NCBI GenBank assembly: GCA_977017575.1
Contig: CDRNVI010000002.1
Span: forward strand, 372,001 to 436,000
Reading direction: 5' to 3'
Length of the DNA: 64,000 bases
Origin: Paramoeba atlantica
Lineage: Eukaryota > Protista > Discosea
The translations under genes were made by a program, and so were the position numbers. How positions within the stretch are numbered: the stretch's first letter is position 1; every line of letters starts with the position of its first letter. Shown here piece after piece: positions 867 through 11,224 of the stretch. The notes beneath the pieces are model-generated. The model searched no databases and was not told the origin of the DNA. It saw only the letters and a program-made list of their open reading frames with translations.

Positions 867-2408
867 CAGACGATGCACGAGATACAAGTTGCAACCCAAC
901 AGCATGACCGGTCGTAGGGGATCAGTGATGCTAGAAGCCAAAACGCATGAAAGCTGCTCATCCAAGTATCATTGAAAATTAATAGTATAGTAATAAACCT
1001 AACCCCCAAATTACAAGTACGATACGACAATAAATAATGTAAATACAATTTGCAATAATAATTAATGGAATGAAAATGAAGTGGATTATTAGTTAAAGCA
1101 CCCCTCTTCCCTCTGGTTCTCCCTCACACGTACTACAAATTAAAAGCATATAGTAAGTTTAATATAATTAAAAGCAAATAGTATTAAAAGCATACTGTGA
1201 CCCCCCACTTTAATATGCTCCCCCTTCCCTCCCCCCCTTAATATGCATAAATTTTGGTGAAAGGGGACTTTTTTTCCTCCTAAAAAAAATTGATTTTTTT
1301 TCACGGTGGTAGCGCAGACAAAATTTCTGTACTTTCCAAGCGAGTGATTAAGCATCATATTTTTGCTACTTACACGACTCCGCTCTATCATTTTTCTTTG
1401 CACAGACTGTAAAATGTATGTCCTATCACTTTTTGTAGTTGGGAACCTTGGATGGCGTGATAATAGAAGCATGTACCGTACGATGTGAATTAAGGAGTTC
1501 TTGTGCCGGTGACAATTACAAAGAAAAGTCCTCTGTAAGTAGGGGGGGACACATTAAATATTCTCGAAAGGGGTTGGGAAGTAGGCCTCGATGACAAGGA
1601 TGCATAGAAGTAGCCGCCATCGGTTGTGTGCCGTAGTCGATTGAATCTAAACGCGGCGTCCCTGTCTCGGAACGGTCTTCTGTCTCTAAGGAAAGAGCAC
1701 TACGGGGCTTCTGAGACGATGTCCTCACTTCGACGTCTACGATTCCCTGATTCCCATCCGTAGGTGGGATTCGCTTAGGTGGAACAGGACTGGTCGATGG
1801 GCATCTCTATTGCTTCCAACGGAGTTTTTGCTTCAAATTATTCTTGGAGAGTTGCCGGTTGATTTCTGCATCCCACTTTTTCAGTTGAGTTTTAGAATGC
1901 ACTGTGTATAATTCACCAAAGGTTTCTCTCATTCATTGTTGTATTGTTGCCATAGCTTTGTGGTGCGTTTGAGACATAGTTCGCCATTTCGAAACAGCCT
2001 TATCCTTCACAACGAAAGGAACATCGCGACGTACGTTTCTCCGAGAACCTAAAACGACTCTAGAACGTTTGGCAACTTTTACTTTACGGGCCCCACTGCA
2101 ATCAACCAAACCTTCCTCGTTATCACTGCTTTCATCAGTGGTAGAACTTTCCTCTGTTTCGCTTAATTCCCCATCAGGGGTTTCGAGGCTAACATTTTCT
2201 ATATCACTACCATGTTCTTCATCAGAATGGTATTGGATGTTCTAATGGGTGTTCATAGGCACATTCTAAGGGGTGTTCTAGGCGCTTCCAGTGAACTTCC
2301 ATGGAGTTCGGACTTGGTAATTTGAGGACAAATTACCGCCGCAAGTACCACTCCGGCTCGCGGGCTCCGCCCGAGTACGGGGACGCCGATCTCTCCTAGG
2401 TCACTTCA

Positions 2409-2615
<207 letters not shown>

Positions 2616-2672
2616 TTTTTTTTTTTTTTTGTACTACGTTGTACAGAATGTTATGCGTCTGTAGCCCCTAAT

Positions 2673-5600
2673 ATGGCAAGCTCAGACGTTCCTGCACAAG
2701 CATCACGCGGGGAACGACATGTGAGGGTTAAAAGCACCACGTGTACAACATGGACTACGTTCGCTAGCATTAAATCAGCCGCTGTCAGCCCACTTGTCAG
2801 ACAGTTTTATCCGAATCCTGAGACCGGTCGCACCGCCCTCACTCACGCGCTTGATAAAAGTAAACCTGCACGCGGACTCGTGGTCGAGTCAGCCGAACTA
2901 TCTAGATATAGAATTCGACACCGAGGAACGAATGAAGAATGGAACTACTACTCAAGCATTGCAGATCTACATACCAAGCTGTTCTCTTCCACGTATTCGC
3001 GTGTCGACTCTCTCAGCCGCGCTCTCGCCAGCTACTTTAAGGGATCCCCTCCAAAGCATCTCCTTCCCTTTGACATTGAACCATTGCACGCAGAGCGCCA
3101 AGGAACTGCACCACCACGAATTGCCACGGAATGCAAGCACAGCTGCAAGAGCAAGGAAACGTGCTCCCACTTATGTTGTAAGCGGCACCTGGAATCATAC
3201 GAAACTATCAAGTCGGACGCGGAGCCCCAAACTGTGCCCAACAACACTACAAACAACGAGTGTAAGCACCTCTGTGGCGACAAACGTACCTGTAAGCATG
3301 TATGCTGCAAACGGCACTTGACCTCTGAGCGACTAGAATTCCAAACTGCGGATCCACCGGACCCAACCGAATCCTCGCAGCATCATGAAAATCAGCTTCC
3401 GCAAGCACCTATCGGCGGAGTCGAAGAATGCAAGCATATCTGCACGAACAAACGATCATGCAAGCACTTGTGCTGCAAACGACACCTCACGACCACCTTC
3501 GCCGGCCCCGACGCTAGTTCTACAATGCTAACCACGGAAACCACCAACTCCCACATTGAAATTAGTTCGACCCAAGTCCCTCCTCCCCTCAGCGAGCCGG
3601 AGCCCCCCTCAGACCCTACACCTATCACGTCTCCTCCAGTGGGAAACCCCCTCCCGACGGTAAGTACGGCCTACGGCACACTTCATTCAATCGGCAGTAC
3701 TATCGGAACCTATATTGTACATGCCGCCCGCCAAGTGCTAGCTGGAAGTGCTACCCCAGAACAGGAATCGCACCCCATCGGAGCCCATGTACACAACCCA
3801 TGCAGCAACGTCAGGGAGGACAATATCGAGAAAGGACCACAACACCGCGCATCCGCCGGCCCGGTCTCGCCTCAAGCGGCCTCGCCCACAGAGTGTAAGC
3901 ACATCTGCACGGACAAGCACACGTGCCGGCACCAATGCTGCAAACGACACCTGGGTATCGCTTCATCCGAACAGCAGCGTAACACTACTGAAACTCAGCC
4001 CACAGGTGACGCGCTCCCCGCACCGCTTTCCCCACCGCGCGGAAGCACTGCAGCACCCATACCTACCCTTCCTGATACGTCCCTACCTACCCTTCCCAGC
4101 CCACGACTCACAGAAGCCTCGGAACCAAGCGACGTGCAAGATGCAACCGCTCCCTGCAAGCACGACTGTCTAAATAGATTCTCATGCAGGCACCACTGCT
4201 GTAAACGAAACCTCCCCCATCCAACGTCCCGTGCTAGCCTCTTAGCAGCCGCAGCAGGGATTGCTGGTTGCCGCATGAATCTGAAGTTAAACTACAATGT
4301 GTGGGAAGTAGCCGATACACATGCCGAAGAGCTATTCCTTCGCTTTCGTATACAAGACGTTCAAAGCAAATCTGAGGCCGAAGAAAATGTGACTCTACTC
4401 ACAGCTTGCATCGTCGTAAGTTGCGCCCTTGCCGCCACGCGAGAACATGGGGATCACGGAATTACACTTCGACAACGAGGTCCCCCGCAGTGCCTCCGTC
4501 GACGCCCTATTGCTGCCGAAAAGGCGCGTAGGTTGCTTGAAACCGAGGCGTACCTCCTCCGCAAAAAAGCGAGGCACGCAACTTCGTCTGACCGTACCAG
4601 GCTTCTAAGGGAAGCGAAGAGCGCCCAATCAGCAGCAATCAACTTCTCGAAGGAAGCGGAAAGGGTACGAACCCGACGAGCGCAACAAGAAGCCAACCAT
4701 CGTTTCGCGAGAAATGCCTGGGCGGCTGCCACCGAAGTGCTGGAGAGACCGACGGGGGAAAGCACAGTGCACAAGTACCCGACATGCGCGGATACTGATG
4801 TCCTCGAGCATTACAAGCGCGAACTCAAAGCGTCACAATCGAAGGCAATGTTACCAGACCGTTCGCACCTCCCTGGGAATTCTATGGCGGAACAACATTA
4901 CTGGTCTGATATCACACCAGGCGATGTGACACGGGCTGCCATGAAAAAGAAATCTTGTTCAGCCCCCGGGGAGGACGCCATTCAGAATACTGCACTAAAG
5001 AAACTCAAATCTCTTCACCCCCACATCGCACACTGCTTCAATAACCTCCTTCGATGGAGAGTGTGTCCCACACAGTGGAAATCGGCCATCGTAAAATTAC
5101 TCCACAAGGGTGGGGATGATAGCAATCCCAAAAACTGGCGCCCAATCGCCCTTACGTCATGCCTAGGCAAGCTGTTCCATTCCATTATCGCCTCAAGCAT
5201 CACCGAGCACGTAACGAAGGAATATATTCTGGACACCAGTGTCCAAAAGGGGTTCCTACCGAAGCTAGCAGGATGCATAGAACATACAGCTGCCATTAGC
5301 CAATGCGTTCGCCACGCTAAACAGAACAGAAAGCCCCTATGCATGGTTCAGTACGACCTAACGAATGCCTTTGGATCGGTGCCACACGAGATTATCCTTG
5401 CTGCGCTCAAGTGGGCGAGGATAGACTCAGTCATTGTTGAATACGTCGAGCAAATGTACCAAGGATCATCTCTTCGCTTGAAACTCGCAGGTGGTCTCTC
5501 TGAACCCATCCCAGCCCAAAGAGGAGTCCTACAGGGTGACACTCTCTCGCCAATCCTGTTCAATATGGTCATGGAAGTTGTCTACCGCTACATCCGCAAA

Positions 5601-7178
5601 GCCCGTCCGACACTAGGATTCTCCACTGGACGTGACCTACACTTCTGCAAAGCGTTTGCAGACGACCTCACCTTTCTCACAGACAATGCACATCATGCAC
5701 AGGAAGTGACCGAACTCCTTGAGACTGTCCTAGCGTGCTTGCATATGAAACCCAACACCCAAAAGTGCCGTGTATACAGCTTAGGGTTCAACGGGAAACG
5801 AAGCTTCACAACTCTTCGCCCCACAATCAAACTATGTGGAGAAGCGATTCCCCATGTGGCAGATAAAGGCACAACGTTCCTAGGGATGACTATTGCCACC
5901 GGAAAGGATACCCCACGCATGGTGTTCTCCTTACTAAGAGACAGGATCCGAAGCATGATGAAGAGAATTGATGACAGCGACCATATAGGACACGCGCAGA
6001 TATGGATGTATCAGAATGCAGTACTGGGCCGACTACGATACCTTCTGACGATACACGATTGCCTTACATATAACCTTATTCGGAGACTCCAAAAGATATG
6101 TAGCAAATATTTACGAAAGTGGATAAACCTAGCGTCGTACGCACACCCCGACCAGCTATACATCCGGAACGGCGGCTGGGGTCTTACGTCCCTAGTAGGC
6201 TTATGGAAGGAGTGTACTGTCTCTTGCCTCACTATTTTAGCAGCTTCTACGGGCTCATCAGTACACCGTACACTTGAAGATCGTATGCAATGGGAAGCCA
6301 GCCTTCAACACTCCCAACGGAACCGCGCAGCAAACCTCGTCGTAAACCGATTAAACGACAGAAATGATGCGCTATCCTGGGTGAGACGGCACACGGACGA
6401 AGAGATGATAGCAGCATATCAACGACGAGCACCTATTGCAGGTAGATGGTTCAACAGCACTGACAACGAGGAATTAGCTGCGGACTATGCGAAAGCCTTA
6501 CATAACTTAAACGGAAAGGAGATTTCACGCTTCACATCCATGGTGCTCACAGGATACGCCCCTCCATCGCAGACTAATACGAGATCCTGGGGGAAATCAG
6601 ATGGGTATGTAACTTGCCCTATTTGTTCCGAGCGCAAACAGACACTGCGCCACATACTCACCTCATGCACGACTTCGTTAGAACAAGGACGCTATAAATA
6701 CCGGCATGACGCAGTTCTCAAAGTACTCTTTGACACTCTGAAAACCAGTGACAACATCCAGTCGATGTACTTCGACCTCCCTGGTGTACAAAGCAGTGGC
6801 TGCCCCCCTTCCTGGCTCACGAACTACACTGTACTCCGACCTGACGGTTGGTTGGCTCTTAAGGATGGATCTGAATTCATCCTAGAACTCACATGCCCTT
6901 GGGAAGAAAATTTTGATCTCGCACAGGAGCGAAAGAGAGCGAAGTACGAAGAACTCTTGAGATACCGTCAAACGACAAATCCCCGAACTACTCTACTAAC
7001 ATTTGAAGTCGGAGCGCGCGGCAAACTGAACAACAGTGTAATGGACCTCTCTTGGATTTTCGGACAAAAACAAACAAGACAAGTCCGAGAAATGCGGCAA
7101 AGAATGACTGAGACAGCTCTTCGAACGTCTTTTATGCTATACGTGATGCGCCACTCTCCCACCTGGAGTCCCCAGTAG
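2673..7178 (+). CDS. 1501-aa polyprotein: 5x Cys/His finger, RT, CCHC knuckle, restriction-like endonuclease
   Basis: First ATG 2673. RT motifs WRPIAL, QKGF, DLTNAFGSV, QGDTLSP, FADDL; CPIC-x8-HILTSC; RHD, RPDGW, LELTCPWE, KRAKY. Confidence 0.93.
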   Translation: MASSDVPAQASRGERHVRVKSTTCTTWTTFASIKSAAVSPLVRQFYPNPETGRTALTHALDKSKPARGLVVESAELSRYRIRHRGTNEEWNYYSSIADLHTKLFSSTYSRVDSLSRALASYFKGSPPKHLLPFDIEPLHAERQGTAPPRIATECKHSCKSKETCSHLCCKRHLESYETIKSDAEPQTVPNNTTNNECKHLCGDKRTCKHVCCKRHLTSERLEFQTADPPDPTESSQHHENQLPQAPIGGVEECKHICTNKRSCKHLCCKRHLTTTFAGPDASSTMLTTETTNSHIEISSTQVPPPLSEPEPPSDPTPITSPPVGNPLPTVSTAYGTLHSIGSTIGTYIVHAARQVLAGSATPEQESHPIGAHVHNPCSNVREDNIEKGPQHRASAGPVSPQAASPTECKHICTDKHTCRHQCCKRHLGIASSEQQRNTTETQPTGDALPAPLSPPRGSTAAPIPTLPDTSLPTLPSPRLTEASEPSDVQDATAPCKHDCLNRFSCRHHCCKRNLPHPTSRASLLAAAAGIAGCRMNLKLNYNVWEVADTHAEELFLRFRIQDVQSKSEAEENVTLLTACIVVSCALAATREHGDHGITLRQRGPPQCLRRRPIAAEKARRLLETEAYLLRKKARHATSSDRTRLLREAKSAQSAAINFSKEAERVRTRRAQQEANHRFARNAWAAATEVLERPTGESTVHKYPTCADTDVLEHYKRELKASQSKAMLPDRSHLPGNSMAEQHYWSDITPGDVTRAAMKKKSCSAPGEDAIQNTALKKLKSLHPHIAHCFNNLLRWRVCPTQWKSAIVKLLHKGGDDSNPKNWRPIALTSCLGKLFHSIIASSITEHVTKEYILDTSVQKGFLPKLAGCIEHTAAISQCVRHAKQNRKPLCMVQYDLTNAFGSVPHEIILAALKWARIDSVIVEYVEQMYQGSSLRLKLAGGLSEPIPAQRGVLQGDTLSPILFNMVMEVVYRYIRKARPTLGFSTGRDLHFCKAFADDLTFLTDNAHHAQEVTELLETVLACLHMKPNTQKCRVYSLGFNGKRSFTTLRPTIKLCGEAIPHVADKGTTFLGMTIATGKDTPRMVFSLLRDRIRSMMKRIDDSDHIGHAQIWMYQNAVLGRLRYLLTIHDCLTYNLIRRLQKICSKYLRKWINLASYAHPDQLYIRNGGWGLTSLVGLWKECTVSCLTILAASTGSSVHRTLEDRMQWEASLQHSQRNRAANLVVNRLNDRNDALSWVRRHTDEEMIAAYQRRAPIAGRWFNSTDNEELAADYAKALHNLNGKEISRFTSMVLTGYAPPSQTNTRSWGKSDGYVTCPICSERKQTLRHILTSCTTSLEQGRYKYRHDAVLKVLFDTLKTSDNIQSMYFDLPGVQSSGCPPSWLTNYTVLRPDGWLALKDGSEFILELTCPWEENFDLAQERKRAKYEELLRYRQTTNPRTTLLTFEVGARGKLNNSVMDLSWIFGQKQTRQVREMRQRMTETALRTSFMLYVMRHSPTWSPQ

Positions 7179-7276
7179 ATGCTATAGCAGGTAAAACGCG
7201 CCCAGCATTTTGACTTGATGATTGTCAGGATCAAGGTTGGGTGAAATCTCTAGTGATATATCACTATGATTAAATG

Positions 7277-11210
<3,934 letters not shown>

Positions 11211-11224
11211 TATATATATATATA

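Follow-up and report, generated by a model that had tools for sequence, protein, structure and literature searches.

A 64,000-nucleotide stretch of the Paramoeba atlantica assembly GCA_977017575.1 (contig CDRNVI010000002.1, positions 372,001 to 436,000; hereafter the window) carries two head-to-tail retroelements on its + strand: element 1, from position 2590, and element 2, from 7551, the latter truncated at its 5′-end. Element 1 is a long interspersed nuclear element (LINE) with a restriction-like endonuclease (RLE), the N-terminus of which bears five copies of a Cys/His finger of the type present in Mer3/HFM1 helicases. Arrays of this finger are the common N-terminal module of an entire superfamily of RLE LINEs in this spliced-leader-using protist. 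The array probably serves as a zinc-dependent, multivalent nucleic-acid anchor of low specificity, common to the clade, that would functionally replace the C2H2/Myb module.

A conserved finger at the N-terminus of RLE LINEs

Element 1 has just one open reading frame (ORF), with no ORF1, and is homologous to RLE LINE proteins. The ORF combines a reverse transcriptase (RT), a CCHC knuckle and RLE motifs (Table 1) and contains neither C2H2 nor Myb according to Pfam, nor any match to a C2H2 regular expression. This makes element 1 an RLE (R2-group) LINE, though one with an uncommon N-terminus. C2H2 fingers, Myb or the Ulp1 protease are present in more distant RLE relatives, and the proposal of the sequence-only reading that the usual C2H2/Myb module had been replaced thus holds for this ORF.

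When all six frames of the window were searched with the expression C.H.C.{5}C.H.CC, five matches were found in element 1 (fingers 1 to 5 in Table 1), exactly where the same reading had placed them. All are in frame with the 1501-residue ORF, and each is directly followed by K-R-(H/N)-L. At least three copies had also been claimed in element 2; two strict ones were confirmed, that at 8112 and that at 7839 (previously noted as ~7849), while the third (~7558) proved degenerate and truncated. The latter site (~7551–7610) reads ..VCKDKLLCAHLCCKRHF, its seeming first Cys being a translation through the (TG)n tract. Since the full-length relatives (L027) have R-K-H-V-C at this position, the site represents a degenerate finger that has also been cut by the 5′-truncation. 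No match to the motif was obtained in 300 shuffles, and the analytic expectation was 7e-6 per window against the 7 observed. Each 20-residue finger contains 5–6 Lys/Arg and has an isoelectric point (pI) of 9.0–9.6. The linkers between fingers are acidic and consist of Pro/Thr/Ser to 31–46%, compared with 23% across the ORF, in agreement with the Pro/Thr/Ser linkers described earlier.

The fingers are conserved well beyond the window. The closest outside relatives, P0002 and P0003 (European Nucleotide Archive assembly ERZ24900291), are 38–39% identical to element 1 over the RT-RLE region and keep the fingers: P0002 has three strict copies, while P0003 has two, and a third lies a short way upstream in the P0003 locus (L002). 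An alignment of 35 distinct retroelement fingers showed seven invariant columns, five of Cys and two of His, as well as two Lys conserved in more than 90% of them; across 107 mixed fingers the seven ligand columns were again invariant and the two Lys nearly so. Between element 1 and a related family in the same genome, family D, fingers 1–3 are ~83% identical (~74% at non-ligand positions); the linkers are ~35–40% identical, with many indels. Judged by this pattern of conservation, all five motifs are true copies, kept by selection, of a Mer3/HFM1-type Cys/His finger, C-x-H-x-C-x-[DN]-K-x2-C-x-H-x-C-C-K.

The genome (45.7 Mb in 248 contigs) was then surveyed with a 21-base DNA pattern for the half-motif C-x-H-x-C-C-K. 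This rendered 449 sites, compared with 5 for the control pattern, arranged in clusters of 3–6 and distributed over many families. At least 140 relatives of the element 1 RLE domain are present in the genome, many of them within intact ORFs of 1400–1860 residues that also bear fingers. Arrays of 3–6 copies agree with the earlier description of the finger as multimerised. Only element 1 and the families termed A and B were seen intact. Families A, B and P0079 have one further finger, different in type (..CCKV[FY]GP), which lies several hundred residues past the array and nearer the RT (G000:C9:477085; L023:442-537; P0079 residue 550). In two other loci, L006 (family D) and L027 (family C, to which element 2 belongs), the fingers lie in two reading frames, the shift falling between fingers 3 and 4 in family D and between fingers 1 and 2 in family C; these may be either broken copies or a deliberate change of frame.

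In a FastTree phylogeny of the RT-RLE region, in which only local supports are given, the finger-bearing LINEs (element 1, P0002, P0003 and P0079) formed one clade with 100% local support. This clade is nested in an unnamed 18-row group together with sponge and metagenomic RLE LINEs and stands apart from three other sets of rows, the Ulp1/NeSL-like, the Myb/R2-like and the CRE-like ones of the window itself, in a tree that held no HERO, R4 or Togen references. Membership of the CRE clade (SLACS/CZAR/CRE1) does not fit these elements: their flanks are microsatellite or unique DNA, as opposed to the spliced-leader RNA genes in which CRE elements insert, and the tree separates the CRE-like ORFs of the window from them. 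A metagenomic locus outside the clade (L033; JGI metagenome 3300045502, 954-3524) encodes an 856-residue RT ORF with two C-terminal CCKRHL fingers and no RLE, and its RT groups with LINEs of the apurinic/apyrimidinic endonuclease (APE) type. The finger would thus seem to have found use on more than one occasion, the C-terminal use in this lineage being apparently independent.

Relation to the finger of Mer3/HFM1 helicases

A protein homology search with the finger region brought up nothing but the window's own protein. A hidden Markov model (HMM) built from the 35 retroelement fingers was searched against 1.84 billion representative sequences (E <= 1e-3). It found 209 proteins, and the strict spacing was present in 149 of the 150 best. 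Pfam analysis of the 14 longest matches identified ten proteins with a single cassette of DEAD, Helicase_C, winged-helix and Sec63 domains and two partial Sec63 helicases; the remaining two were an RT protein and an SNF2-family protein. In all 12 helicases the finger lies just after Sec63. Four of the matched helicases bear names given by their sources: HFM1 (spotted gar and oribatid mite), MER3 (Blastocladiella) and Sec63 (Pichia). Single helicase fingers matched the retroelement profile at E values of 1e-4 to 1e-6 (hmmsearch), and an hhalign comparison of the two finger profiles gave a probability of 99.1% (E 6e-19), a value that is partly circular because the helicase set had been picked with the retroelement profile. 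The succession C-x-H-x-C-x5-C-x-H-x-C-C followed by Lys is invariant in 35/35 retroelement and 16/16 helicase fingers, so that the C-terminal zinc-finger motif of Mer3/HFM1 shares with the retroelement fingers both its ligand spacing and its conserved Lys. The likeness to Mer3/HFM1, which had been put forward earlier, is therefore supported by named proteins with identical spacing.

The resemblance is limited to the motif. In the helicases it follows the Sec63 domain of a single-cassette Ski2-like protein, in one or two copies (yeast-type Mer3 already has two in tandem), whereas here an RT-RLE protein bears 3–6 copies at its N-terminus. In the elements of this genome the finger mostly ends in CCKRHL; helicases and ERZ24900291 elements have CCKxG[VIL] instead. 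Further carriers of the finger are an Elsinoe SNF2-family protein, in which it is C-terminal, a Zymoseptoria hypothetical protein and a Cantina transcript. The HFM1 motif is named a "zinc finger motif" in the literature, and human infertility variants map within it (PMC8383409).

Another known finger was considered and set aside. The NF-X1 zinc finger (PF01422) was the top, if weak, ESM Atlas lead for the array (0.80), but no Pfam match to it was obtained up to an E value of 10; it also opens with C-x-H-x-C, but its ligand pattern is different. NF-X1 fingers are found in tandem DNA-binding arrays.

The genome contains a single-cassette DEAD/Helicase_C/Sec63 gene resembling Mer3/HFM1 (L037; G000:C30:1035800-1040428) and a duplicate of it (L038; C3:441316-445944). 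The 357 residues covered downstream of its Sec63 domain contained no finger, and no half-motif was listed in the region of the C3 copy. A recent capture of the finger from the present host gene is therefore unlikely. The array had been described as "co-opted and multimerised"; the second term stands, while co-option from the host helicase finds no support in this gene. The link to Mer3/HFM1 could reflect ancient common descent, transfer or convergence.

Insertion sites and possible roles of the array

The array had been proposed to read TG repeats or the element RNA, and the 5′-flanks of the families bear on the first of these. Element 1 (five fingers) was found in two independent copies after (TG)n/(GT)n, the loci on contigs C2 and C12 being duplicates. 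The whole (TG)n-element 1-(TG)n-element 2 arrangement (window 2414-11130) recurs at G000:C12:561020-571142 with an upstream flank that is 100% identical, which speaks for a haplotig, or for a recent segmental duplication, and not for independent insertions. Element 2 (four fingers plus a degenerate one) was seen at (TG)n and, elsewhere, at a TG-rich satellite, and L021 (G000:C21:255666-259058, - strand), with four fingers, is directly preceded by (ATGT)81. In contrast, family A (5–6 fingers, ORF of ~1850 residues; 11 loci, at least two pairs of which have the same flank) and family B (4 + 1 fingers, ORF of ~1860 residues; five copies) have unrelated, non-repeat 5′-flanks, and the single insertion of family D, with four fingers, is in unique DNA. 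Similar arrays are thus found at (TG)n, at (ATGT)n and at unrelated sites, so the array is probably a general nucleic-acid-anchoring module and not a TG reader. On this comparison of flanks it does not track the target and would not by itself explain the landing in TG repeats, which weakens the earlier proposal.

What does go with the microsatellite-associated group is a conserved N-terminal domain upstream of the fingers. It is common to element 1, family D, family C with element 2, L021 and probably the ERZ24900291 families, and is confined to this group; families A and B have in its place only ~70–90 unrelated residues. An AlphaFold2 model of the domain was of moderate confidence (mean predicted local distance difference test, pLDDT, 69), and its best VIA-align rows were DNA-binding parts of I-HmuI, of the Paulinella DNA-binding protein sCTP and of I-TevI (Z scores of 6.4, 6.3 and 4.6). 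I-HmuI and I-TevI are homing endonucleases; all three scores fall below a noise level of ~8 and give no more than a lead. A phage-integrase SAM-like identity was a weak Atlas lead for this domain (0.83); Foldseek found nothing significant.

The 3′-ends offer further candidates. All elements seen, four in number, have a similar terminal motif, ..(C)TATGAT(A/T)A (7255-7277 and 11195-11215 in the window, L001 ~7500-7525 and L002 ~7330-7347), and three of the four are followed by simple repeats, element 1 by (TG)n, element 2 and L002 by (TA)n. Given these common ends, pairing of the element RNA with the target and the specificity of the nuclease are both candidates for what sets the target.

Taken with the conservation of the fingers, these observations are best accommodated by the anchor proposed above. 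Each basic finger (pI ~9) would fold around zinc; its seven invariant ligands would suit either two zinc ions bridged by one Cys or a single ion, the other residues then being structural. So folded, the array would keep the protein in place on target DNA or DNA/RNA junctions while target-primed reverse transcription proceeds. Other features would more likely settle the choice of (TG)n, namely the endonuclease, the N-terminal domain specific to the family and the pairing of the RNA 3′-end with the nicked repeat.

Several points weigh against such an anchor. Zinc binding and nucleic-acid binding by the fingers are properties that we infer, as is a role of the array in integration. A literature search found no functional or structural study of the HFM1 finger, and the profile comparison that links it to the retroelement fingers is in part circular, as stated above. 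Pfam has no model for the finger, either in the whole ORF or in each 32-residue finger taken singly, and a search of the PDB by sequence found no solved structure that matched a single array or the profile. The AlphaFold2 model of one finger, made from 107 aligned sequences without metal, reached only moderate confidence (pLDDT 74) and had no fold match (Foldseek on the PDB, VIA-align), the domain being too small for this to be informative about the novelty of the fold. Finally, only the 5′-junctions of families A and B were seen, and a short target motif common to them is possible.

The foremost alternative is that the fingers bind the element RNA or act as chaperone knuckles, comparable to the CCHC knuckles of gag/ORF1, and so provide cis-preference or help strand annealing instead of binding target DNA. 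The knuckles are small, basic and carried on flexible linkers; the element has one ORF and no ORF1; and the APE-type lineage described above (L033) has two fingers at the C-terminus of its RT ORF, the place where L1-like elements have a Cys-rich RNA/DNA-binding motif. Against this, RNA binding in RLE LINEs, as known from R2, is usually ascribed to the region directly upstream of the RT. An RNA-binding or chaperone function is thus a minority possibility, though the best placed of those considered besides the anchor.

A sequence-specific reader of the target repeat, in which every finger would recognize a short run of (TG)n bases, double- or single-stranded, and thereby set the insertion site, is less likely again. 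The position of the array equals that of the N-terminal zinc finger/Myb DNA-binding module of R2; the insertions of element 1, element 2 and L021 in (TG)n, TG-rich satellite and (ATGT)n are those expected of such a reader; the non-ligand residues of orthologous fingers are kept between element 1 and family D; and the TG group has a conserved type of its own for the last finger. Nevertheless, families A and B have equally regular arrays at their unrelated flanks, the sole insertion of family D seen is outside repeats despite the identity of its fingers to those of element 1, and it is the N-terminal domain, not the fingers, that is confined to the microsatellite-associated group. A wider version, in which the finger is a modular nucleic-acid-reading unit, its arrays a third programmable targeting module of LINEs beside C2H2 and Myb that directs them to (TG)n, (ATGT)n and other sites, and the same chemistry explains how Mer3/HFM1 recognize their DNA substrate, is improbable to the same degree.

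Smaller still is the probability that the fingers are a protein-protein motif that mimics the HFM1/Mer3 finger to recruit a host recombination or repair factor. In HFM1/Mer3 the motif does sit within the disordered C-terminal tail that follows Sec63, and one SNF2-family protein carries it C-terminally. However, the host Mer3-like helicase has no finger, and hence a host partner fitted to the finger is not obvious; moreover, multimerization to 3–6 copies suits avidity for a polymer better than a single partner. Lastly, a functionless chance or low-complexity Cys/His pattern, for which only the absence of a database model speaks, can be dismissed: it is refuted by the counts in the window, and neither the genomic excess over the control nor ligands that are invariant across elements only 39% identical are compatible with it.

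The elements in their surroundings and among known systems

The coordinates of both elements are collected in Table 1. A short conserved block in the long linker between fingers 3 and 4 (YGTLHSIGSTIGTYIVHAARQVLA) has a related stretch in element 2. Copies of at least five RLE LINE families, those of ERZ24900291 among them, open with the 3′-part of a spliced-leader-like sequence (..GATACAGTTTCTGTACCTTGTTG); this part varies in length, is sometimes repeated and leads into a T run. The remnant corresponds to a kinetoplastid-like spliced leader; together with the T run it suggests that the elements were copied from trans-spliced mRNAs, and it points to a euglenozoan-like host. In L021, a Tc1/mariner insertion splits the first finger; the end of this transposon (CAGGGGTGTAAATTTGGATGTGGGGGG) also adjoins the 3′-end of element 2 (window ~11216).

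Table 1. Features of elements 1 and 2 and of the adjoining repeats (window positions unless another locus is named)
Feature	Position	Strand	Source or remark
(GT)88 microsatellite beside the 5′-end of element 1	2414–2589	.	Tandem Repeats Finder (TRF), sequence
Element 1 5′-end: 3′-part of spliced-leader-like sequence (..GATACAGTTTCTGTACCTTGTTG), T run, short 5′ untranslated region (UTR)	2590–2672	+	
Spliced-leader remnants	window 2590-2615; L003-L026 5′-ends; L001:2615-2641; L002:2364-2390		
Element 1 single ORF, 1501 residues from the first ATG	2673–7178	+	identical to P0001
Conserved N-terminal domain, ~125–150 residues, upstream of the fingers	2673–3128	+	
Finger 1 (CKHSCKSKETCSHLCCKRHL)	3132–3191	+	regular expression
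Finger 2	3261–3320	+	regular expression
Finger 3	3429–3488	+	regular expression
Conserved block in the finger 3–4 linker (YGTLHSIGS..ARQVLA)	3672–3743	+	kept between element 1 and family D
Finger 4	3894–3953	+	regular expression
Finger 5, distinct type (..NRFSCRH..CCKRNL)	4155–4214	+	kept as last finger in element 1, element 2 and L021
Reverse transcriptase domain, PF00078	5112–5894	+	Pfam, E 8.5e-28
C-terminal CCHC knuckle (CPICSERKQTLRHILTSC)	6615–6668	+	
Restriction-like endonuclease motifs RPD .. ELT .. KRAKY	6837–6947	+	
Element 1 3′ UTR, last letters ..CACTATGATTAAATGA	7179–7277	+	(TG)n follows at once
(TG)136 separating elements 1 and 2	7278–7550	.	TRF
Degenerate, 5′-truncated finger opening element 2	7551–7610	+	
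Element 2 finger (CGHKCHNKTECLHSCCKRHL)	7839–7898	+	regular expression
Element 2 last finger (CNHRCANRFTCKHACCKRNL)	8112–8171	+	regular expression

Work is under way to engineer RLE LINEs such as R2 for inserting genes at specific sites, and where these elements go is decided by their N-terminal DNA-binding modules. A whole clade that has swapped C2H2/Myb for arrays of another small finger enlarges the known set of these modules. The families of this one genome have nearly identical architectures and different insertion behaviour, which makes the part that sets the target directly testable. The arrays are also the first natural "multimer" context for the HFM1/Mer3 finger, a context that argues for a nucleic-acid-binding role and provides an easy system for its study.

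No description of this finger in any retroelement was found in the literature searched (Repbase lay outside the search), in line with the earlier statement that no such element was known. Surveys of kinetoplastid transposable elements list only INGI, CRE, VIPER and TATE (PMC12278014). Among RLE-encoding elements that lack long terminal repeats, Togen of fish is (TG)n-specific (Kojima & Jurka 2015, PMC4640811); going by its published description, it resembles element 1 in being an RLE LINE inserted in (TG)n, and it has been reported from fish only. With R2, NeSL and CRE the elements studied here share a single ORF, an RT, a C-terminal CCHC knuckle with a PD..(D/E)xK nuclease, insertion in repeats and frequent 5′-truncation; they differ in that the N-terminal C2H2 fingers and Myb of those LINEs are replaced by an array of HFM1-type fingers.

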